A stretch of DNA of 64,000 nucleotides. It comes from Macrostomum lignano (Eukaryota). Made by a program: the position numbers and the translations under genes. Positions 4,165-17,478 of this stretch are shown here, one piece after another; the stretch's first letter is position 1; each line of letters opens with the position of its first letter. The DNA lies in contig NIVC01003880.1 in the NCBI GenBank assembly GCA_002269645.1, forward strand, positions 54,571 to 118,570. Direction: 5' to 3'. The notes under the pieces were generated by a model that saw only the letters and a list, made by a program, of their open reading frames with translations, was not told where the DNA came from and ran no database searches.

Positions 4165-7100
4165 ATGCTGCAGGCAAAAATTTTGCTCATCTTAGCCGCC
4201 GTCTGTTGCGGTCTCTTGACCCCGGTGGTAAGTCAGAACACCTACGGTTGCTCCGGAGCGGACCTCTCAAAGCGGAGGCTGACCAACTATGGCAAATACA
4301 CGTTCATCTTGCACGCCTTGGCACCGAACAGCAGCTATCTGGAGCCAAACATGGACTGCACCATCACCATCATTGGGTACAGTTCCAGCCGTTGGCTAGT
4401 CACCTTGGATACTATCAGCCTTAGCGCTTATCAGGTAAAGCTGATCGAATGCCTATCGGCCTTTTAAATAATGTATTCTTATACAAGTAGTGGATTTTAC
4501 ATGGTTTAGATAATAGAAGAGGATCAGGAGTAAGAATCAATTTTATCTTAGGACTTGGGATAGCTATACTCAGCAACATTGAAAAGTCGCCACTCTATGC
4601 GCCAGTGAGCAATTTCTCTTGGACTATTCTGAACTAAAAGGTACGAAAAAAACTGGTCAGGGTAACTTTAATCCATCCAATACCCGCCACACCGCTCCAC
4701 CACTTTATTCCTCAACTCAAGTCTGCCGCGGCGTAGCTGAATGCGTCACTCGCAAAGATTGAGAGACTTCGCATGCACTCTCAAAGGTGGCGACCACAGA
4801 TGGAATCTTCTGTGATGGCGATTTTTCGATGTGCATTAAAAAGTCGCCACCTTTGAGAGTGCGCAGTAAATTCTAGCTCAGTATTGTCTTTTGAGCGACG
4901 CAACTTGCGCCAGAGTGAGGAGAGATTGGGAAGAGCGGAGGGCAAAGATTGGATGGATTGACGCTGCCGCCCGGTTTTCATGGTTTTTTCAAGCATTTTT
5001 AAGATCAAAATGGTTGGCCAGGTGATAGACGCTGGTCGAAAAACACTGCTCACTGGGTCAAAGGGTGGCGACTTTTCAATGTCGATGATCCGTTATAGAA
5101 GTTCAATTCTTTTCTGGTAAGGCTGGATCTTTTTCATAAAGTACATTTTTAAGATGAGACGAGAACCGCATGCGTGGCGTGAGTTGCGTCACTTGGGTCT
5201 GATATCTAAACAAAGTTGACCATTGATTTCGGGGGTGGAAACTACTTTAACGTGTTGCTGAGTGCATGCACCAGAAAACAAAACGAAAAAAGTACGTATG
5301 AAGTGGTCGATCACTTGTGCAGACAAGTAAGCAGCATCTTCGATAAGAATGAGCGTTGATAAAATTTATTTTGATTTGATTTTTCGAATAAAATTACTGA
5401 GACCCCAATCAGGCAAGACGCCAGGTTGTACTTTCATTAGATTTGTCAGTTTGCAGATAGTATGAGGTCTCCAAGTTTCTTAAAATCTAATACCAGAGTA
5501 TAGCTCGTGAAACTCCAACTGCGAAGTGAGAATAAAAGCAATTTGTTTTGAGTCCCAAGCCTAAGTCTGATTATTCCATGGAATTTATAAGGTACTATAT
5601 CTCTAGTGCTACATGTATACATGTACGGGCAACAAGTAGCCGACTTCGCTTCCGTGCCAAGTCACATTAATTTGCGGCTGGTGCACGAAACTTCACCTGC
5701 GGCGGGCATGACAAGCGATCCCAACCCACACGAGAGGGCCAGCACCAAAGACAGAAAGACAGAGTTAGCATATATCTGACGCTGAGAAAGTCAGGGCCGC
5801 ACTGTACAGCCCCCGTGCGAATGTGTGTGCCTGCGAAGAATGTAAGTGCGGTGCTCAGAGTTCAGCAGAATTGATTATAACTGCTAGCTTTCTTGCTGGC
5901 TTAAGATCAACAATCACCTTGATTTGCGGCCCTCTCTAATGCATGTGCGGCCATGAGAACGGAAGTACCGATAACGTTCCGAGAGGTCAATCGCCTGGGG
6001 GGGGTGCTAACTCCTGTTTTTCCTGTTTTTAAGCAACTGATAATAATAACAATAATAAAAAATTTATGACACCTTACCCTAATGGGCAGATGTGCAACCG
6101 CTATTGCGCGGCGCATCTGAAGGCTGCGTACGGCTGTTCAGTCCAAGGACTGGGGGGGGGGTCGCCACACAGCCTCAATTACCCCAACTAATGCTGGCAC
6201 CCATTTTACAGCTGGTGAACTGAAGCAATGCAGAGTTAAGTATCTAGCACAAGGACACAAATTCTTCCGAGTTGGGTCGAGAATCGAAAATCCGACCTTT
6301 CAGTCGTGAGTCCGACGCTCTGACCACTGGGCTACAACTAGGTTGACTGAAAATGTCGATATTTCTTCGCCCAGCAAGTCCCTAACCGGAACAATTCGTC
6401 ACAATCTGTTTACGTCTCTTTCTCAGGCCGAGTTCGATGTCTACGAAGGCACCAGCACCAGAGGAAAGAACTTGATCTCTCTAAACAGCGCCGGGACTCT
6501 CTACCGACAGTTAGGCATCAGCAGCGGCAGCTTCACTGTCCGTCAGAAAACCAAATCAACGCCGGCCGGTAAGGCAACTGGCGTCCGGATGACCGTTGAA
6601 CATCTGGAAACCTCAGATTGCCCAACTGGTTGGTACAAAGTCTCCAGCTCCGCTGGGTACTGCTACGGTGTGCCTAGACTGGCCCTGAACTTGACCTACG
6701 ATGAGTCCGCTAAGGCCTGCAACATGCTGCTGGCCAACCTCGTCATGGGCAACTTCAACTACGACTCGATCTCGGCGGAGCTGTTCTCGGCGCCCTCGAG
6801 CGTTGTTAGCCCGCGACTGACATACTGGGTCGGCATGTACGAGAAGAACGACGAGCTGAAGTTCCTCAACAAGTACAACTCGCTTGAGTGAGTCTATTTT
6901 AACAGTTCATATCAAAGATTTTTGTAGTTGATACCTTGGTCATAGTTGCAGATATTGTTAATAGGTGTTACCAAATTTCTTCGCATTGCCATCAGATTGA
7001 GTTTACAGAGTATAATTGAACGACTGGATAATTGATGCTTAAGTCGTCCTTAAGATTCAACGCTGAATGCTTACAGACTGATTAAATGTCTTCCTTACAA

Positions 7101-7796
7101 AATACAATATGTACTCTCACACAATTTTTCACAACTTCGATGAACACGTTAGACCTCAACTGATTCTGATTCTTAACTGGTCTACAATATTGCAGCAGCA
7201 TTTCCGGCCGCCTGTGCAGTCAGACCAGCTCCGACTGCCAGTGCATCACTTACCAGAGCGGTCGCTTCTACAAAGACAACTGCAACACCAGGCGGCAGTA
7301 CGTGTGCTACATGCCCAAGGGCGGAACCGAGTCCTACTACAACCTTAAAAGCCAGATAAATTCAGCCAGCAACGTCATAAGCATGATTGCCATCGTGCTG
7401 ACTGTCGGCTTCATTCTGGTCATCCTGGTCAGCCTCATCGTCGTCTTTGTCTGCTGCATTCGTCGGAACGCTGCCGCTAGACGAACTCGACGACAGAGCA
7501 ACTTTAATGCCGCCAATTCCAACGTCAACGCTGGACCATTCGTCATCGGCGAAGCCGCCGGAGTGCCGCCGTCCTACCCGATGCCGCCGCCACCCCCTCC
7601 GTTCACTGCCTCCCCCGCCGCTCCGCCCTACACAGCCACCGCGCCAGCCTACTCCACCTACTCCAACCTAGGCTTCGAGGCTGGCGGCAATGACGCTGCG
7701 GCGCCGGCGACGTCCGCTGGAGCCAGCGGCGGCGACAACGGCGAGAAACCGCCGCCCTACAATCCCGACTGGTCGAGAAACAATGTGGCGGCCTGA
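4165..7796 (+). CDS. Type I membrane protein: signal peptide, CUB-like domain, C-type lectin domain, TM helix, Pro-rich tail with PPxY motifs; join(4165..4434,6427..6887,7196..7796), 443 aa
   Basis: Hydrophobic signal (MLQAKILLILAAVCCGLL). Donors CAG|GTAAAG (4435) and GA|GTGAGT (6888), acceptors ending 6426 and 7195; phases 0 and 2 match and the total of 1332 nt is divisible by 3. CTLD pattern CPTGW..CY..YDESAKAC..YWVG..C..Y..NC..YVC. TM IAIVLTVGFILVILVSLIVVFVCCI followed by RR. Confidence 0.8.
4576..5082. mobile_element. MITE-like element with terminal and internal inverted repeats, in intron 1 of the lectin gene
   Basis: 18-bp perfect IR ACATTGAAAAGTCGCCAC (4576-4593) / 5065-5082, plus an internal 20-bp perfect IR (4775-4794 / 4843-4862). 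No TSD established. Confidence 0.45.
6040..6338 (-). mobile_element. tRNA-derived SINE with CORE-like domain (copy 1)
   Basis: Minus strand starts GTTGTAGCCCAGTGGTCAGAGCG (A-box-like) with a degenerate B-box TTCGATTC, then GTGTCCTTG..ACTTAAC..CTGTAAAATGGG resembling the MIR/CORE core. A second copy lies at 12395-12688. Confidence 0.7.
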
Positions 7797-8034: not shown

Positions 8035-8230
8035 AAAATGAATGCCTGAAACACCAAAATGAGTGCCTGCAGCGAAAACAAGAGTGCCTCCGGCGCCAAA
8101 ATGAGTGCCTCCGGCGCCAAAATGAGTGCCTCTGGCGCCAAAATGAGTGCCTCCGGCGCCAAAATGAGTGCCTCCGGCGCCAAAATGAGTGCCTCTGGCG
8201 CCAAAATAAGTGCCTGCAGCGCCAAATGAG
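8035..8230. repeat. 21-bp minisatellite (AAAATGAGTGCCTCCGGCGCC)n, about 9 copies
   Basis: Visible tandem units; explains the ALILAPE shadow ORF. Confidence 0.95.
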
Positions 8231-9374
8231 CGCTGACAACGCCGATTCTTAAAATAGTGTACATGTAGAATTCTTTACTTTGTCCCCCACCATAAAACCA
8301 ATGGCGACGCTCCTGACAAAAGATGAATACATTGAAGCATAGATCTTCCCTGTTAGTGTACGCCTCCATATTTAAATAATTCAAATTCACATTTTTCGAA
8401 AGTTTGAAAACCAGACTTAATTTCGGCAGTGACTAGCTACACGCTTAATATATGACTAAGAGTAGCTCGATCGAGACTGAAACTTAAAATTGAAGCTTTG
8501 GTCTACCGGGCATACAGGTCTACAGGTCAGGGCATACAGCTCGGTCGATGCTGCCTTTTACTTTTGAATGAGTCCAAGGTATTGGGCGTGTTTTTAATTT
8601 TGTGGCCAAAAATTGATCATCAATTTATACTTTGCTTTAAAATGTAATATTCATTGAATTTTTTGTCGTGTTCGGTGATTTATGTGCATCTTTAAAGGTA
8701 CATTTTTTTGAGAAAACGTTTAAGAACTGGAAAACTTTTATGCACCTTTTTACATTTGGAATAATACGAGCGAGCGTACTTTGCTACCTGTAAATGCCTT
8801 GAAATTAGGGAGAATCATTCAGGTTTTTCCGGTACTATATGAAAGATACTATTTTATTTTGTTTCAATGTACTTCCTTAATTTGTGTCGATTTTCCAATT
8901 TATTTTTTGTACAGCTCCGTGTTACTGTAGCGAGACATGAAATCTGCATATTCGAAACAAATTAGTAATGAATATTTTAAAGTAAACAATTAAAGCTCTA
9001 AATATTCAAGACCTTTGCAGAGAAGCACTTTAGGCTGGCAAAGTTAACACAAAGTTGCATTCAGATCTGACTTTAAGTTTACCCTAACTTGTGATTTTAA
9101 TAAAATTATCTATAATTTCTAATTAATAAACCGAATCATAAACTATTACGACATTTATAATAATGGAAATATTAGTTCACAAATTTATTGATTATATAAA
9201 TAGTATTCATGAAGATAAGTCTATTCTCAACAACAAGCGGAATATTTGACGCAGACAAGTACATGTACGAGCATGCCATACAGAAAGAGAATAGATACTA
9301 GAGAGGGTGAGGAGAAGGAAACAGGAAATGGTGATAGGGCAGAGAAGTGGAGCAGAGATGAGAGAGAACTGTGG

Positions 9375-9377
<3 letters not shown>

Positions 9378-9469
<92 letters not shown>

Positions 9470-10195
9470 GGAGTAAAGGGAGAGAGAAGTGGAGTAGAGG
9501 GAGAGAGAAGTGGAGTAGATGGAGAGAGAAGTGGAAGTAAAGGGAGAGAGAAGTGGAGTAGAGGGAGAGAGAAGTGGAGTAAAGGGAGAGAGAAGTGGAG
9601 TAGATGGAGAGAGAAGTGGAGTAAAGGGAGAGAGAAGTGAAGTAAAGGGAGAGAGAAGTGGAGTAAAGAGAGAGAAGTGAAGTAAAGGGAGAGAGAAGTG
9701 AAGTAAAGGGAGAGAGAAGTGGAGTAAAGAGAGAGAAGTGGAGTAAAGGGAGAGAGAAGTGGAGTAAAGGGAGAGAGAAGTGGAGTAAAGGGAGAGAGAA
9801 GTGGAGTAAAGGGAGAGAGAAGTGGAGTAAAGGGAGAGAGAAGTGGAGTAGAGGGAGAGAGAAGTGGAGTAAAGGGAGAGAGAAGTGGAGTAGAGGGAGA
9901 GAGAAGTGAAGTAAAGGGAGAGAGAAGTGGAGTAAAGGGAGAGAGAAGTGGAGTAAAGGGAGAGAGAAGTGGAGTAAAGGGAGAGAGAAGTGGAGTAAAG
10001 GGGGAGAGAAGTGGAGTAAAGGGAGAGAGAAGTGGAGTAAAGGGAGAGAGAAGTGGAGTAAAGGGAGAGAGAAGTGGAGTAAAGGGAGAGAGAAGTGGAG
10101 TAAAGGGAGAGAGAAGTGGAGTAAAGGGAGAGAGAAGTGGAGTAAAGGGAGAGAGAAGTGGAGTAGAGGGAGAGAGAACTGTGGAGTAGAGAGAG
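9378..10195. repeat. (GA)n microsatellite followed by 21-bp polypurine minisatellite (GAGAGAGAAGTGGAGTAAAGG)n
   Basis: Visible tandem units; explains the SLSLYST shadow ORF. Confidence 0.95.
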
Positions 10196-10757
10196 AGAGA
10201 AGACAGTGAAGTGGGGAGATGGTAGAGAATTAAAGAGAAAGGAAAATAGGAGAGAGATGAGATGACATTTACCAGACAAAGTTAACCTCCGGGAGATTCA
10301 ATTGGATTGAAAGATCTGCATAAAATCTTGAACAGTGTAAGATTTTTTTGGAAGCTCGTAAAAGCCTAATAGAAAAAACCGACTTCAATAGAAGAGAAAG
10401 TAAATATCGAATGCCTCGAGTGTTATTTATTACACAGGTGAGGGCCAACTTTGAAGATTAAATGAGGATAAGCAATTTGAGAGACAATTAATTTCGAAAA
10501 TGGAATTTTTTTCACATGAATTCATATTAACAAATGAATTGACATTGTACAGAATGATAATCTATACCTATAAAAAATGAAAACTGTGTCTTCTATTTTA
10601 AATGGCAATCAGAAAACACGACTTCGGCCTGTCAACAATTACGTCGATACCTGTAGCTGTATTAACGTAAAATTGTGTACTCTAGCTATAGGTAGAACAA
10701 TGAAGCTTAGATTTATATATACTGGTATATAGATGAAGTCGTAACTAAATTGAGTCC

Positions 10758-13273
10758 TTACTGGTACAACGGTTTCAAGAGGCACTTTTTCGTTAGGGTG
10801 CAGGTGAACTCTGAAATCGTGCACGCGATCGTTGAATGGATCGGAAAACGAGCTCGCTCCATCTGAGCATTCACTCTGGTCATTATTTCCTTGATGTCTT
10901 CATCCGAGTGATGCTTCTCGATCTCGTTGCACACGGTCTGAACAAAGAAGGAGCCCGTCGTGCTGTTTCTGTAGGCCGGTGAGTCCTTGGTGCTCGATCT
11001 GCAGACCAGGAAGTCGCTTCCCTTTGGACTGAATCGTCTTTCCATCGGAGCGCTGTCAGTCGATTCTTCGCAGACTTCAATGGTTTGGCCTCGACAGGCC
11101 TGTACGAAGAATATCTTTGGCTTGCCGAGTAGGCCCGGACAGATGTCCGACTGGAAAGTCTCTAGAATGCGGTTCAGCTCCAGTGCATTGCCGTTGCTGC
11201 CAAAGATTGATTTTTCATTGCCGTGAGCCATGAGAAAGCAGACAAAGCAGCCGTGGTGCATAATTTCCTCCTCAATGGCAACTTCGTGCAGCAATTTATC
11301 GATATCGTAGGCTGGCAGATCCTCAGCAACTCTCAATTCGAAGTCCAACCGTCCAAAGACCTCCTTGATGCGAGTGACATCCAGCTCTGAGCCAGGGCGG
11401 CAGTTAAACCCAGAGGAAGCGGAGTATTTGTTGATGTTAATCACCAGACAGACACCCTGAGGGGAGGTCATTGTGTATGACAGCAGGGGCACTCGTGGCT
11501 GAGTCCCAGCAAGGCCACCAACGCTGCTGCAAGTGAAGTTAAGAGTACGGTAAGTTCAAGTAAATTATTAACAGCGACTTGGGTGTATACTGACGTGTTT
11601 GGACGGTCGGGCTCAAGTTCCCGCGGCACCATCAAACTCTGGTCTTCGTGCTGCTGCAATTCCCATGCTGAGAGCAGTTCTTCCTGTTCGTTTCTGAAGT
11701 TCACATGCAAAAAAATAAAAGGGTCCCGTGCCTCTATTTACAACGGAAATGCAAGGCAGACAAGCAGAACGGCGGTAACTTACGTGCGGTCTGCAGCTAG
11801 GGGTACAGTCTCCTTGTACTCTATTCCTTTAAGGCCTTCGATGGACCGACCACCTGAGATGTATGTTTGGGATTTATTCTTAGAGCCAGGATTTACGAAT
11901 TTCATGCTTACTAATAAAACAGCTTTTCTTTACCGGTCTGGCGAGAATTTGTGGGCCATCGCTCAAGAGAGCGGACCTTCTGGTCACTCAATGGCGATAG
12001 TCTGGCGTAGGCAAATTTAGGACCGATGCGAACTCTGCTTCTGGTCTCTGCAGCGACGTGATTGTCTGGTTCTCGAAGTAGAAACACATACCTGCGATTG
12101 GAAAGCAAAGCTAGAAATTTACTTAGCGAATAATTAATAGTAGTAATTGTTCTGTTGTTGAATTAACGAACGCAGAAACAAGATAGATAATTATCCGGGC
12201 GCTCAGTGGCACCAAAAGAGGGGCTTGGCCAATAGGAGGGCGGCTCGTATATTTATGCACGCGGGGAAGGAAAGTTCTAGAAAGACCGGGGAAGGAAACT
12301 TCTGGAACTATGCGTAAACAAGTCCGCGGTGGAAGTTTCTAGAAACGCTGTCCCCGAACTACCCCTACGCATCGCATGCCTTTGCAATACACAACAGTAA
12401 TAATTGATAACACCTGCTCCAATGGGCAGATGTGCAATCGACAGCTCAGCCGCAGCTATTGTGCGGCGCATCTGAAGGCTGCGTACGGCTGTTCAGTCCA
12501 AGGACTGAGACGTCGCCACACCTCAATTACCCAAGCTAATGCTTGGCACCCATTTTACTGCTGGGTAAACTGAAGCAATGCAGAGTTAATGTCTTGCTCA
12601 AGGATACAAATTGTTCCGAGTTGGGTCGAGAGATCGAACCTCCGATCTTTAAGTCGTGAGTCCGACGCTCTAACTACTAGGCTACAACGGCCCCTAGCCA
12701 ATAAGCCATGCATCAATAGAGGAAATGAAAACTCACTTACATGTCGGGGTTAAGGCGTGATGCTTTGCTAGACGTGCTAGCCTTGCGCCAGAAGCCTGAG
12801 AGGTCACGGATACTTTCACCGAGTCGCTTCACCTGATAGCTCACGCTTTCATTTTCCAGAATGCGCCTCACAAAGTGCTCGCAATTGTTCTTTTGCAGGC
12901 TGTAGTGCGTTTCGCCAAGACACCCGAGACTCGTCTCAATAACAGCTTCACGTTGCAGGTCGGAGCAGCTGCACTCAAACACGATTATCTTTGAGTCCTT
13001 GGCAACAGTATGGAAGTCTTCAACGGAAATGACGCCTTTACCGTCTTTCTTTAAGTTGGATAGTTGGCAAATGATGTGACGCACAGGGCTGGACGCTCCT
13101 GGGATGGATATTTCTCCAGCTTCCAATTTGCTCAGGTACCCTTTGCCGATGTAGATAGCAAAGTGCTGATAGCAGCCTCTGTCAAAGGCCACAGCCCAGC
13201 CTGGCTTGAGCACTTCTAGAGCCTCGTCGACTTTGGCTTTTTCTTTGAAAACCAATTCCTTCTGCATGCACAT
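10758..13273 (-). CDS. LRAT/PLAAT-domain-caspase fusion protein; complement(join(10758..11526,11595..11693,11784..11853,11934..12091,12741..13273)), 542 aa
   Basis: Exon 1 has KPGWAVAFDRGCYQHFAIYIGKG and YSLQKNNCEHFV (LRAT H-box and NC motif). Last exon has YTMTSPQGVCLVINI, RPGSELD, LMAHG, KPKIFFVQACRG, AYRNSTTGSFFV (caspase p20+p10). Four GT-AG introns (donors GTAAGT, GTAAAG, GTAAGT, GTCAGT) with phases 2/1/2/2 give 533+158+70+99+769 = 1629 nt with no internal stop. Confidence 0.8.
12395..12688 (-). mobile_element. tRNA-derived SINE with CORE-like domain (copy 2), inside intron 1 of the LRAT-caspase gene
   Basis: Co-linear with 6040-6338 (shared GCGCGGCGCATCTGAAGGCTGCGTACGGCTGTTCAGTCCAAGGACT and GTCGTGAGTCCGACGCTCT). 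Confidence 0.7.
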
Positions 13274-15064
13274 AATGCCGGCAAACTGAACGTCACTGGT
13301 TTAGAATGCCCTCAAAGACAAGTATAGCCACCTGAGATTCCCTAATAGAGTTTTTTATGGCCCTTGTTATAAACGATGCGTCTATAAGTCTAGCCTGGCA
13401 AATCCGTGGAAATTCCACGGCTAGCTGATGTATCTTTATCACTGACGTTTTATCTGCCTTTCACGAGTATGTTGCGCTGACATAACTATTAGCATGCATG
13501 CGTTCAGATATGGCTGACGGTCTAAAAATGCGAGTGCAATTTTGCTTGTTTTTGTCGCCGCTAATTTCTTGGAAATGGAGGTAAAGAAGTTTACTTCGCA
13601 CAAACAAAAAACTATTTTGCTTCTAGAGAAAAAACCCGGCCAAAGCTGCCACTAAGTACAATTGTCTAGAGATAAAACATCCACTTCCTTTCGAGTACCT
13701 GATAACTTGAGAATAGCTCTCGAGTCGTCATTTAAGGTCTTTTGATCTAATGGACAGGTGAAGTGATACATTCTAGGCACCAAAGTTTCTATTCTGAATT
13801 CTGAATGTTAAAATCAATGAGAATGCTCCAGCAAGTAACAGCTGACCCCTGCTTCAACCATAGGAAGCGACAATGTACATGTACAAGGTAAGAAAATATA
13901 ACTATATAAATTCCTTTTAAAATCAAGTAAAGACTTCGCCTCATTTTGACCTAAACCCAGATAATCTTGACAACGAAAAATCCCTCCATTACATACGCCA
14001 ATATAGCTACTGAGCGGATATTTTTTATACACAGGCTTCAACTTTTTGAGGCTCAAAAAGTGCAACACATACAGGATACTATTTCTTAGATTTGTAGGAT
14101 CTGAGCTATCAAAGTTTGATCTCATATGTAAATTCCTTTTCGCGCCGGAACTAGAAATACAAAAGCTCCGTTCCTGCCGACATGGTCAGCTGGGCTGGCC
14201 ATAGACTATAGCTAGAATCTTAATGCGCCCCTGTGCAAAGCCTTTCCAGCCGAGAAGGGAGCATTTTATACTCGGCTTGGACAAATCTTGGGTCGAAAAA
14301 AACAGTTTCAAAGTGCATTTCACTTAATGCTCTCTGAATAGATTATGCAGTGTGTACACTCGATATCTAGCAATAGACACTACAGTTCGCTTTGAAATCT
14401 GCAAACAGGCCTTTTTGAAAGAGAAAGCACTGCACCTCCTTAATACGAGTAGTGCATCATTTTATAGAAAAGTAAATCAGCTACAACCATGGATATTTTT
14501 GCATACATCGGATTCTGAGACTGATGATGTCATCACAGAGAATGCTGAAACCGAGTCGCTGCATTTCATTGCAGATAAGTATGACTTTTTTCACCCATTT
14601 TCGTATGATCAGCGCTGCTACCTCTTCAAAAATGAGTAACGCGTATCTTATATATATACTTAAAAGCTTAAATTTTGAATATATTTATTGTTAATCCAGT
14701 CTTCTGCATTTCGAGTTCGCACAAACTATAGCTGGTAAAAACAGCTCAAGTTGATTAAAAAAACTTATTACATTATACCAAAATAAATTTTACAATCGGT
14801 AGTAACTGTGAACTCGAATTAGAACATTGGCTTGCCGTTGCTTTTCGGGGACAAAATGGCAAAAGGAACAACTTTTGAAAACATAAAAATTGAAGCAAGG
14901 AGTCTGAAAAGACCAGGCGGATATATCATATATAAAGAGTGAACAGGGTTTAAGAAATGATGCTGAACAAACAATGAACTCTTGAGAACAATTGGAATTG
15001 ATAATTTAGGAGAACATGGAGAAATACAGCCGAATAGGGATAGAATTCAGATATTCAGGGAATA

Positions 15065-16365
15065 ATTCAGGTGAACAAGGGGAAAATTCGGGGAAACAAA
15101 AATTCTGGGGGATAAGGGGAGAATTCAGGGGGAACAAGGGGAGAATTCTTGGGGAATGAGGGGAGAATTCTCGGAGAACAAGGCGAGAATTCAGGGGGAA
15201 CAAGGGGAGAATTCGGGGGGGGGGCAAGGGAGAATTCGGGAACAAGGGGAGAATTCTTGGGAATAAGGGGAGAATTCTCGGAGAACAAGGGGAGAATTCG
15301 GGGGGAACAAGGGGAGAATTCGGGGGGAACAAGGGGAGAATTCGGAGGGAACAAGGGGAGAATTCTTGGGAATAAGGGGAGAATTCTCGGAGAACAAGGT
15401 GAGAATTCGGGAGGAACAAGGGGAGAATTCGAGGGGAACAAGGGGAGAACTCTTGGAGGGACAAGGGCAGAATTATGGGGGAACAAGGGGAGAATTCGGG
15501 GAGAACAAGGGGAGAATTCTTGGGGGGACAAGGGGAGAATTCGGTGGAGGGGCGCAAGGGGAGAATTCGAGGAACAAGGGGAGAATTCGGGGGGAACAAT
15601 GGGAGAATTCGGAGGGAACAAGGGGAGAATTCTTGGGAATAAGGGGAGAATTCTCGGAGAACAAGGTGAGAATTCGGGGGGAACAAGGGGAGAATTCGGG
15701 GGGAACAAGGGGAGAATTCGAGGGGAATGAGGGGAGAATTCTCGGAGAACAAGGCGAGAATTCGGGGGGAACAAGGGGGGAACTCTTGGAGGGACAAGGA
15801 AAGAATTCGGGGTGGACAAGGGGACAATTCAGGGGGAACAAGGGGAGAATTCGGGGGGGGCAAGGGGAGAATTCGGGGAACAAGGGGAGAATTCTTGGGG
15901 AATAAGGGGAGAATTCTCGGAGAACAAGGGGAGAATTCGGGGAACAAGGGGAGAATTCTTGGGGAATAAGGGGAGAATTCTCGGAGAACAAGGTGAGAAT
16001 TCGGGAGGAACAAGGGGAGAATTCGAGGGGAACAAAGGGAGAACTCTTGGAGGGACAAGGGCAGAATTATGGGGGAACAAGGGGAGAATTCGGGGAGAAC
16101 AAGGGGAGAATTCGGGGGGCAAGGGGAGAATTCGGGAGAACAAGGGAGAATTCGAGGGGAACAAGGGAGAATTCGGGGAACAAGGGGATAATTCGGGGGA
16201 ACAAGGGGAGAATTCTTGGGGAACAAGGGGAGAATTCTTGGGGGGACAAGAGGAGAATTCGTGGGGGGGGCAGGGGAGAATTCGGGGAACAATGGGGTAA
16301 TTTGGGGAAACAAGGGGAGAATTCGGGGGGAACAAGGGGAGAATTCTTGGGGGGACAAGGGGAGA
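15065..16365. repeat. About 21-bp minisatellite (GGGGAGAATTCGGGGGAACAA)n with variant units
   Basis: Visible tandem units rich in GAATTC; explains the many PRILPLF/GENSGG shadow ORFs. Confidence 0.95.
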
Positions 16366-17478
16366 AAAAAATGAATAAAAGCTGAGCAGCTCAGTGAGAG
16401 CACACAGCGCCAGCCAGATATATAAGCCAACAGCTTTGCTGGCACCAGCACAGGTCCGCACAGTTTTCTCAACAGGAAGCTCTCAGCTGCGCTCACCACC
16501 AGGCGCTGCGGGTCGACACTCGCGGCGAAGGCGCGGCCATCTGGCCAGAGCGCGCCGGGCTGGCGGTGGCGCCGCGCTCGTGCGCCGCGCTAGCTGAAGC
16601 CGCAGCACGTGGTAGCAGTTGGCGCGAGGTGAACCGCAGGCGATAGCACAGCGGCCCAGGCGCCAAATAGAAGACTGGCGCCAAGAACCTCGTGCACAAC
16701 CAGGGTGGTAGCGAGACGCTGGCCCGAGAGGTCAACCGGTGACCAATGAGGTCACTGAGCCTGTTCTCCCCAGGCAACCCTGACACTGCCAATGCGACTT
16801 CTGTCTGGTTCTGTAGACTGTGAAGTTTAATATTAACTTACAATTAGAAATATTTTTTTTACAATGAAACTTATTGATAGAGATTTCTAAAACTTTCCTT
16901 TTTCTTTTCAAAATATTTTACCAGTGCTAAAAGTTCAATGATAATATCTCAAAAGTTTATTTGATTCTGTATAGTAGAAAGCATCTAATGTTTCTAGCTA
17001 TATTTGACTGATGTTAAACAAGTAGGTGTCATTTTATAAAATTTAACAATGGATTTACTTTAATTTTGTAAAACTAATTCAACTAGTTTGTTTAACCTTT
17101 AAAAGTAACAAGAAGCTGTATTGAAATCATAATTTACAAAACAAAATATATATCTATACTATAGATTCTGGCTCAAAATAAAATCAATCTAACAGTATTA
17201 CATATTTAAAATACAAATGCCCTAAATATGAGACTATGAAATTTTCAAATCTAATGAATACATATAATTTGACTAAGTAATAATGTATATTATTCTAATA
17301 TAATATACCATATTCATTCAAACTTTTTATTTTAATGCCTGTATTTGAACATTTGAAGACTTTTGATAAAGTAAATTTTAAATGCTATATTAATTCTTAC
17401 TTGACTTGACTCAGCTGCAGGGGGCTCTGTGCATCCAGATGCAGCGAGGAGGCGTTGCCGCCCATTTCGCTAACCCTT

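Follow-up and report, generated by a model that had tools for sequence, protein, structure and literature searches.

The LRAT-caspase gene

We analysed a stretch of 64,000 nucleotides (nt) from the flatworm Macrostomum lignano (GenBank assembly GCA_002269645.1, contig NIVC01003880.1, positions 54,571 to 118,570 of the forward strand; hereafter the window, numbered from its first letter). Its minus strand carries a gene, here called LRAT-caspase, that encodes an LRAT/PLAAT-like lipid-enzyme domain and a complete caspase in a single chain (Table 1). A first-pass annotation of the DNA had proposed that an LRAT-like open reading frame (ORF) of 178 codons and a separate caspase ORF are joined through three small exons (158, 70 and 99 nt) into a 542-residue protein, the stop codon of the LRAT ORF being spliced away. 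This model stands: the TAA lies inside the first splice donor (GACAT/GTAAGT), all introns are GT..AG, and the five exons (533+158+70+99+769 = 1629 nt, with cumulative phases 2, 1, 2, 2 and 0) form a single frame of 542 codons plus TAA. The region that links the two ORFs contributes 109 codons that are free of stops and in the caspase frame, for which the local base composition gives a chance probability of ~0.0016.

The translation is identical to GenBank PAA49434.1 (UniProt A0A267DL95; BOX15_Mlig031264g1), whose annotated gene covers 2516 nt and coincides exactly with 10758-13273, and the splice model drawn from the DNA letters matches this RNA-derived coding sequence (CDS) base for base. The annotation was built from RNA-seq through StringTie/TACO and a de novo transcriptome, not ab initio; transcription units were split at experimentally mapped spliced-leader (SL) and poly(A) sites (TBONE), and ORFs were called by TransDecoder (Wudarski et al. 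2017). An older, independent gene set joins both domains too (UniProt A0A1I8GH60, A0A1I8G067 and A0A1I8GKZ5; models P0002, P0157 and P0158). The M. lignano SL is 35 nt long with an ATG at its end, and its acceptor motif is [T/C]TNCAG. At the candidate SL acceptor upstream of the LRAT exon, the SL-borne ATG would be in frame with the LRAT-caspase ORF, and UniProt model P0158 opens with FAGIMCMQ, the reading from 13285 that starts right after this TTCAG. Intron 1 contains neither AATAAA nor ATTAAA. We are in very little doubt that LRAT-caspase is one real five-exon gene with a fused architecture.

Table 1. Features of the LRAT-caspase gene in the window, in the direction of transcription
Feature	Position (strand)	Extent	Remarks
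Candidate SL trans-splice site	13286..13290 (-)		TTCAG acceptor, 12 nt 5' of the ATG
Exon 1	12741..13273 (-)	533 nt, aa 1-178	Ends in phase 2; whole LRAT/PLAAT-like domain and helix 146-168
H-box HFAIY	13151..13165 (-)		His37, the catalytic base in enzymes of the LRAT family; 111/111 aligned relatives have His
RHIICQL strand	13061..13081 (-)	aa 65-71	Kept in the paralogue; Gln70 likely third triad residue, His66 on the same face (by inferred register)
NCEHF	12872..12886 (-)		Cys131, acyl-accepting nucleophile; Cys in 110/111 aligned relatives
Intron 1	12092..12740 (-)	649 nt	
Exon 2	11934..12091 (-)	158 nt, aa 178-231	Linker with conserved YVFLLRE...KFAYARL
Exon 3	11784..11853 (-)	70 nt	Disordered linker; not conserved in the paralogue
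Exon 4	11595..11693 (-)	99 nt	Disordered acidic linker; site of a 1-nt indel in the third gene copy
Exon 5	10758..11526 (-)	769 nt, aa 287-542 and TAA	Complete caspase p20/p10 domain
CRPGS	11388..11402 (-)		Arg330, aligned to caspase-3 Arg64; S1 pocket
MAHG	11220..11231 (-)		Catalytic His388-Gly389, aligned to caspase-3 SHG (His121-Gly)
QACRG	11088..11102 (-)		Gln429 (aligned to caspase-3 Gln161) and catalytic Cys431
ESTD444/S	11052..11066 (-)		Candidate intersubunit cleavage site, aligned to caspase-3 IETD/S
AYRNS	10962..10976 (-)		Arg473, aligned to caspase-3 Arg207; S1 pocket
Candidate poly(A) signal	10426..10431 (-)		First AATAAA/ATTAAA hexamer past the stop codon

The caspase half

Pfam recognizes both halves of the protein above their cut-offs. 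Peptidase_C14 (PF00656) spans aa 311-534 with 148.9 bits against a cut-off of 21.4 and covers the profile from position 2 to 231 of 233. Among proteins of solved structure, the effector caspases 3 and 7 match best, with an E-value of 4e-37 for the alignment to caspase-3. In the AlphaFold2 (AF2) prediction the caspase domain has a predicted local distance difference test score (pLDDT) of 88-98 over aa 311-430 and 470-510, the last ~25 residues being poorly modelled, and Foldseek superposes it on caspase-3/7 and procaspase-3 with target-normalized TM-scores of 0.76-0.80. The His-Gly pair, QACRG, the two arginines of the Asp-binding pocket (in RPGS and AYR) and the ESTD/S site, all listed as retained at first pass, are present and align to caspase-3, in whose numbering Arg330, Arg473 and Gln429 correspond to Arg64, Arg207 and Gln161. 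Judged by these residues, nothing speaks against a competent Asp-specific protease.

Neither CARD nor DED was found, no death-fold Pfam family matching at E<=1; the N terminus adopts an LRAT fold instead. Within the protein collection searched, the nearest caspase domains are those of M. lignano ankyrin-caspases (45% identity) and of sponge caspases with unassigned N-terminal regions of ~290 residues. Sponge and ENA caspases of similar length (P0007-P0010) were considered as hidden LRAT-caspases and rejected, as they lack an NC motif, show no resemblance to the N-terminal 300 residues and gave no Pfam match.

The LRAT/PLAAT half

LRAT (PF04970) spans aa 22-139 with 57.6 bits against a cut-off of 24.3, and PLAAT3, PLAAT2 and PLAAT4 are the sole solved relatives (E-values of 2e-7 to 8e-5). 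Modelled by itself with AF2, the domain reaches a mean pLDDT of 85.1 and a predicted TM-score of 0.77. Foldseek matches it at a probability of 1.00 to the catalytic domains of PLAAT3, AdPLA, H-REV107 and PLAAT4, with TM-scores of 0.70-0.71 for 7zom, 4fa0, 4dot and 7c3z and 0.66 for 7zot. Structure prediction thus places a PLAAT3-like and a caspase-3-like fold in one chain. The retention of the H-box histidine and the NCEHF cysteine, also noted at first pass, is borne out for His37 and Cys131 in an alignment of trimmed LRAT domains (MAFFT L-INS-i), on which the counts over 111 relatives given here and in Table 1 are based.

The second catalytic histidine had been called ambiguous, with GYLSKL or, after an insertion, RHII as candidates. 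By alignment the canonical residue is replaced: phmmer, L-INS-i and hhalign all pair GKGYLSKL with GDGYVVHL, so that Lys49 falls in the column of PLAAT3 His35. Among the 111 relatives this column holds His in 86, Glu in 9 and Asn in 6, with Lys confined to the window protein and Glu in its paralogue. Neither of two AF2 models forms a strand at aa 46-50. Both show a confident strand at 65/66-72/73 (RHIICQLS) between beta2 and beta4, placed where beta3 belongs, and an insertion of ~20 residues lies in the beta2-beta3 hairpin. In P0015 and P0016, the nearest LRAT-only paralogues in M. lignano, this hairpin also contains an insertion, and MAFFT pairs the LLCHL that comes after it with IICQL; the alternation of core and active-site faces would be preserved between Y-V-V-H-L and I67-I68-C69-Q70-L71. 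Given the strand order of the AF2 models, the LLCHL/IICQL alignment and this residue pattern, Gln70 is likely the structural equivalent of the second histidine and would complete a Cys-His-Gln triad. His66 would sit one turn earlier on the same face as Gln70. By strand register and by the LLCHL alignment, it is the less likely candidate for a displaced second histidine, and the RHII alternative of the first-pass annotation thus loses ground. P0015 and P0016 are also the LRAT-only proteins closest to the fusion; they carry full LRAT motifs and Cys-rich C-terminal tails.

The hydrophobic segment of PLAATs is absent, as had been observed. No hydrophobic membrane anchor was found anywhere in the 542 residues, the highest Kyte-Doolittle mean over 19 residues being 1.15, inside the caspase core. 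In the HRASLS family, the third residue is Asn in HRASLS1 and HRASLS5 has no transmembrane segment (HRASLS family review), so that both states occur in accepted members.

Between the two folds, aa 169-303 (~135 residues) have pLDDT <50 and are predicted by AF2 to form a disordered tether. Within this tether the paralogue shares only YVFLLRE...KFAYARL, which exon 2 encodes. The linker contains six Asp sites (LNPD177, REPD187, PLSD214, LAAD252, QHED271 and LEPD283).

Copies and a caspase-dead paralogue

The genome of M. lignano is neopolyploid and its assembly redundant, and two further near-identical copies of the gene were found in addition to the intact window copy. The copy on NIVC01000598.1 (PAA80090.1; 99%) is likewise intact, with 18 CDS differences (10 synonymous, 8 non-synonymous) and no exonic indel. 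Every indel between the two lies in introns or flanks, including a 254-nt insertion in intron 1 of the window copy (12148-12401), which occurs once among the sequences compared. On NIVC01001607.1, the third copy (L004) is annotated as a 279-residue caspase (PAA65912.1) and carries 1-nt indels in the equivalents of exons 1 and 4, the latter at a G-run; these reflect either genuine decay of a gene present in several copies or errors in the long (PacBio) reads.

Three candidates for alternative products were rejected. PAA65912.1 is not a caspase-only isoform, because the indels in L004 left the caspase as the longest frame for the ORF caller. P0002 (495 aa) is not an alternative isoform, as its 'GNLSPTVQTQ' is the same exon frameshifted at the G-run, a prediction artefact. 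'Mlig004795.g2' is not the second gene of a transcription unit, since such suffixes number the members of a cluster formed by cd-hit at 95%, and g1 is not on the same contig as g2.

A divergent paralogue, P0003 (BOX15_Mlig027562g1; 539 aa), is encoded on NIVC01001680.1 (L001) and keeps the order LRAT, linker, caspase. It is ~41-46% identical to the window protein overall, 51% over the LRAT domain and 46% over the caspase, with 10 of 12 residues shared at aa 61-72 (SSPVRH[IF]ICQL). In its caspase QTSQK replaces QACRG, with loss of the catalytic Cys, the AYRNS arginine (the second S1 Arg) is absent, and ASSD/S stands at the intersubunit site. Its LRAT domain has an H-box and NCEHF identical to those of the window protein and keeps Gln70. 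That these motifs persist despite the lost caspase Cys and Arg points to a constraint of its own on the LRAT domain. In both genes intron 1, in phase 2, splits the codon directly before FVFLLRD (P0003) or YVFLLRE (window), and the second exon ends in phase 1; exons 3 and 4 of the window gene are not shared with P0003. Because a paralogue of 41-46% identity shares the domain order and the position and phase of intron 1, we take the fusion to be older than this deep duplication.

Directly downstream of P0003 lie LRAT-only genes (L001 9828-11441 and ~12143-12499), which form a tandem LRAT cluster. The location of the fusion in this local cluster suggests that it originated by the joining of neighbouring genes. 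Upstream of P0003, L001 2851-5237 holds an unannotated LRAT and caspase copy of a third type that still encodes QACRG and AFRD..TGS; its caspase exon is readable only over three frames, as a pseudogene or uncorrected assembly indels would produce.

Distribution and previous descriptions

The LRAT exon was compared exhaustively by phmmer with 1.84 billion representative proteins, and all 135 matches at E<=1e-3 were scanned with Pfam. Peptidase_C14 is present in two of these 135, both from M. lignano, and Calici_PP_N matches occur among the LRAT-domain relatives. In two word-indexed searches, one made with the full protein and the other with a profile of the two paralogues, the pair PF04970 and PF00656 was again confined to M. 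lignano. No LRAT-caspase was found outside this species, within the reach of LRAT domains close enough to the query and of the species in the collection, from which other Macrostomum may be missing.

The first-pass annotation knew of no described LRAT-caspase architecture and held that many prior database entries would speak against its novelty. No paper on the architecture was found in the literature by locus tags, accessions, Pfam pairs or keywords, and to that extent the claim holds. It fails for deposited sequences: GenBank and UniProt contain the identical protein and ~7 near-identical or paralogous entries, with both Pfam domains already computed. All of these are from M. lignano, and none is named for the architecture, the entries being called merely 'hypothetical protein', 'Caspase family p20 domain-containing' or 'Caspase-8-like'. 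The architecture is thus real, lineage-restricted and undescribed in the literature, yet present in sequence databases.

A survey of lophotrochozoan caspases included M. lignano (Krasovec et al. 2024, PMC11463336). For M. lignano it reports just one such pro-domain, a kinase-like one; it states that no further unexpected pro-domain was detected in platyhelminths, and describes ankyrin (ANK) caspases as restricted to parasitic flatworms. Contrary to this last description, the free-living M. lignano has several ankyrin-repeat caspases (P0004, P0005, P0006 and P0011).

Surrounding sequence

Intron 1 contains at 12620-12705 (-) a dispersed tRNA-derived element of ~70-86 nt that resembles a short interspersed nuclear element (SINE; GGGGCCGTTGTAGCCTAGTAGTTAGAGCG...GGTTCGATCTCTCGACCC). 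It recurs at 6271-6338 of the window, at 8102-8156 and 1852-1918 of L001 and at 12404-12471 of the NIVC01000598.1 locus, and is present in introns of both LRAT-caspase paralogues. A tRNA gene was rejected in favour of a dispersed repeat, ARAGORN and Rfam giving no match. A neighbouring gene at 4165-7796 (+) encodes a 443-residue protein with a faint C-type lectin match and adjoins all three near-identical LRAT-caspase copies; a tubulin gene lies further out, upstream of LRAT-caspase. Two long tandem-repeat 'ORFs' flank the gene, one at 15006-16499 with EFSPCSPRILPLFP-type repeats, deposited in GenBank as a 362-residue protein without a Pfam match, and one at 9227-10279 with STSLSLY repeats and a (GA)n tract. 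Both are probably satellite DNA read as protein.

Discussion

Comparison with known caspases and LRAT-family proteins

The caspase half shares with caspases 3 and 7 the His-Gly pair, QACRG, both S1 arginines, the active-site Gln, an IETD/S-like site and, in the last strand, the LTK motif. It differs from caspase-3 in a shorter L4 loop and in a Tyr that replaces Trp206. Whereas the prodomain of caspase-3 has ~28 residues, the window protein carries an N-terminal extension of ~300 residues with a folded, enzyme-type domain. This domain resembles PLAAT/HRASLS proteins and LRAT (NlpC/P60 superfamily) in its H-box His, NCEHF Cys, alpha/beta fold and the helix that follows the catalytic helix, but has no C-terminal transmembrane segment, carries the ~20-residue hairpin insertion, has its second His replaced (by Lys49 according to alignment, probably by Gln70 structurally) and is fused to a protease.

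A parallel in organization would be caspase-8 and cFLIP(L), in which an active long-prodomain caspase likewise coexists with a paralogue that has the same prodomain but no catalytic Cys, as P0003 with its QTSQK does here. The analogy is functional only: the prodomain is of LRAT fold rather than tandem DEDs, and no adaptor is known. In norovirus, the NS1-2 protein is processed by the host's caspase-3. NS1-2 is viral and has a transmembrane region, and there the caspase and the LRAT-like protein are separate molecules; the likeness, by analogy only, is that NS1-2 is an H-box/NC protein of LRAT-like type and has a disordered region (PMC5217272). Lineage-specific replacement of the death fold has precedents among invertebrate caspases with ankyrin, kinase-like, Z-binding, PARP and ROC pro-domains, according to PMC11463336, whose list does not include an LRAT/PLAAT pro-domain.

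A possible prodomain of LRAT fold and its alternatives

Our tentative reading is that the LRAT-like domain serves as a prodomain for recruitment or targeting, replacing CARD or DED, with P0003 as a FLIP-like partner; we think this possible rather than probable, and we hold the account of gene, architecture and mechanism taken together to be moderately probable. Under this reading the LRAT-like domain, in the place of a CARD or DED, would bring the zymogen to a lipid surface or a partner, through transient S-acylation of Cys131 or through LRAT-type dimerization. The rise in local concentration would let the caspase domains dimerize and cut at ESTD444/S, after which the linker Asp sites could allow the LRAT and caspase halves to separate. 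P0003, being caspase-dead and recruited through the same prodomain, would act as the inactive partner, as cFLIP does for caspase-8. The kinship of the caspase domain supports the reading, as its lineage appears initiator-like: its relatives are ankyrin-caspases, and ANK caspases are reported as the sister group of DED caspases in Krasovec et al. 2024 (PMC11463336).

Several points weigh against it. The closest solved structures belong to effector caspases, whose activation depends on cleavage and not on prodomain-driven proximity. None of the six linker Asp sites is kept in the paralogue, and LEPD283 is LEPN even in the 99% copy. Of the 111 relatives just one has Lys in the column of the canonical second His, so that catalysis by the LRAT domain might be impaired, and the likely assignment of Gln70 comes from secondary-structure order and residue pattern, not from coordinates. 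The architecture is known from a single species, and the mRNA support is indirect, by way of the published annotation pipeline.

The same features can be read in other ways. The first-pass annotation had suggested two possible mechanisms, a membrane-attacking lipase set free by self-cleavage of the caspase, or an LRAT domain that detects membrane or lipid and thereby activates the caspase. If the linker were cut by the protein's own or an upstream caspase, the caspase would be the switch for a soluble PLAAT-like phospholipase/acyltransferase, which on release would damage organelle or pathogen membranes. The disordered linker with its six Asp sites would suit this, as would the Cys131 and His37 motifs kept in both paralogues, even beside a dead caspase; PLAAT enzymes act as phospholipases A1/2 via an acyl-thioester (HRASLS family review), and several promote cell death (PMC2656461). 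We nevertheless consider such a released lipase unlikely. The protein has no C-terminal anchor, which the pro-death activity of HRASLS2 is reported to need (HRASLS family review), its third triad residue is non-canonical, the Asp sites of the linker vary between paralogues and even between near-identical copies, and P0003 would depend on another protease for its release. The existence of an LRAT-pseudocaspase paralogue somewhat favours recruitment or regulation over a purely released lipase. The LRAT-like domain might instead be a pseudoenzyme, a folded spacer or binding module in what is otherwise just a long-prodomain caspase, and LRATD/FAM84-type proteins are thought to be pseudoenzyme LRAT modules of this kind. 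Lys49 at the second-His column, the failure of the canonical beta3 to form there in the AF2 models and the missing membrane anchor are all consistent with a silent domain. We doubt it, because both paralogues, at only 51% identity over the LRAT domain, retain His37 and a complete NCEHF with Cys131, the plausible polar third residue Gln70 is conserved, and full motifs are present in the nearest LRAT-only proteins of this genome.

A more radical alternative would dissolve the fusion itself, with two adjacent genes merged in annotation through read-through or a polycistronic precursor, but expressed as separate mRNAs with the caspase starting at Met306. M. lignano does make many polycistronic precursors that are resolved by SL trans-splicing, the acceptors of exons 4 and 5 match [T/C]TNCAG, and a caspase-only ORF of 279 residues is annotated at the third locus. 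The indels of 1 nt that this copy carries in exons 1 and 4 account for the ORF, however, and addition of the SL at either acceptor, that of exon 4 or that of exon 5, would leave its ATG out of frame. A pipeline that cuts at mapped SL and poly(A) sites left the ORF whole at two loci, and the earlier gene set arrived independently at the same joined domains. The open, in-phase linking codons, the lack of either poly(A) hexamer in intron 1 and the same fusion and intron phase in the divergent paralogue all argue in the same direction, and we regard a chimera as very improbable.

Implications

LRAT/PLAAT proteins are thiol enzymes that form a covalent acyl intermediate from membrane phospholipids, and their fusion to a caspase therefore suggests that the state of lipids or membranes could act on caspase activity, or that caspase activity could lead to membrane breakdown. 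In a more speculative form of the recruitment reading, which we consider a long shot, LRAT-caspase and the LRAT-pseudocaspase P0003 would together make up an activation module free of death folds: the PLAAT-type domain would sense exposed or damaged membrane lipid, by self-acylation of Cys131 or by binding, and nucleate dimerization, while P0003 would tune the response. FADD is reported absent from platyhelminths, and DED caspases from the parasitic flatworms surveyed (PMC11463336). If the module is real, it would be a direct enzymatic link from membrane lipid state to caspase firing in a flatworm lineage reported to be without FADD.

Caspases are normally activated via death-fold prodomains, and each alternative prodomain implies a different upstream signal. 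M. lignano is a model for regeneration and stem cells in which transgenesis is established and knockdown work exists, and a natural pair of active and pseudo-active paralogues in such a genetically tractable animal is a built-in comparison. LRAT-caspase corrects the published inventory of flatworm caspase pro-domains: it is one more lineage-specific caspase prodomain, here with an enzyme fold and, as far as seen, in one flatworm.

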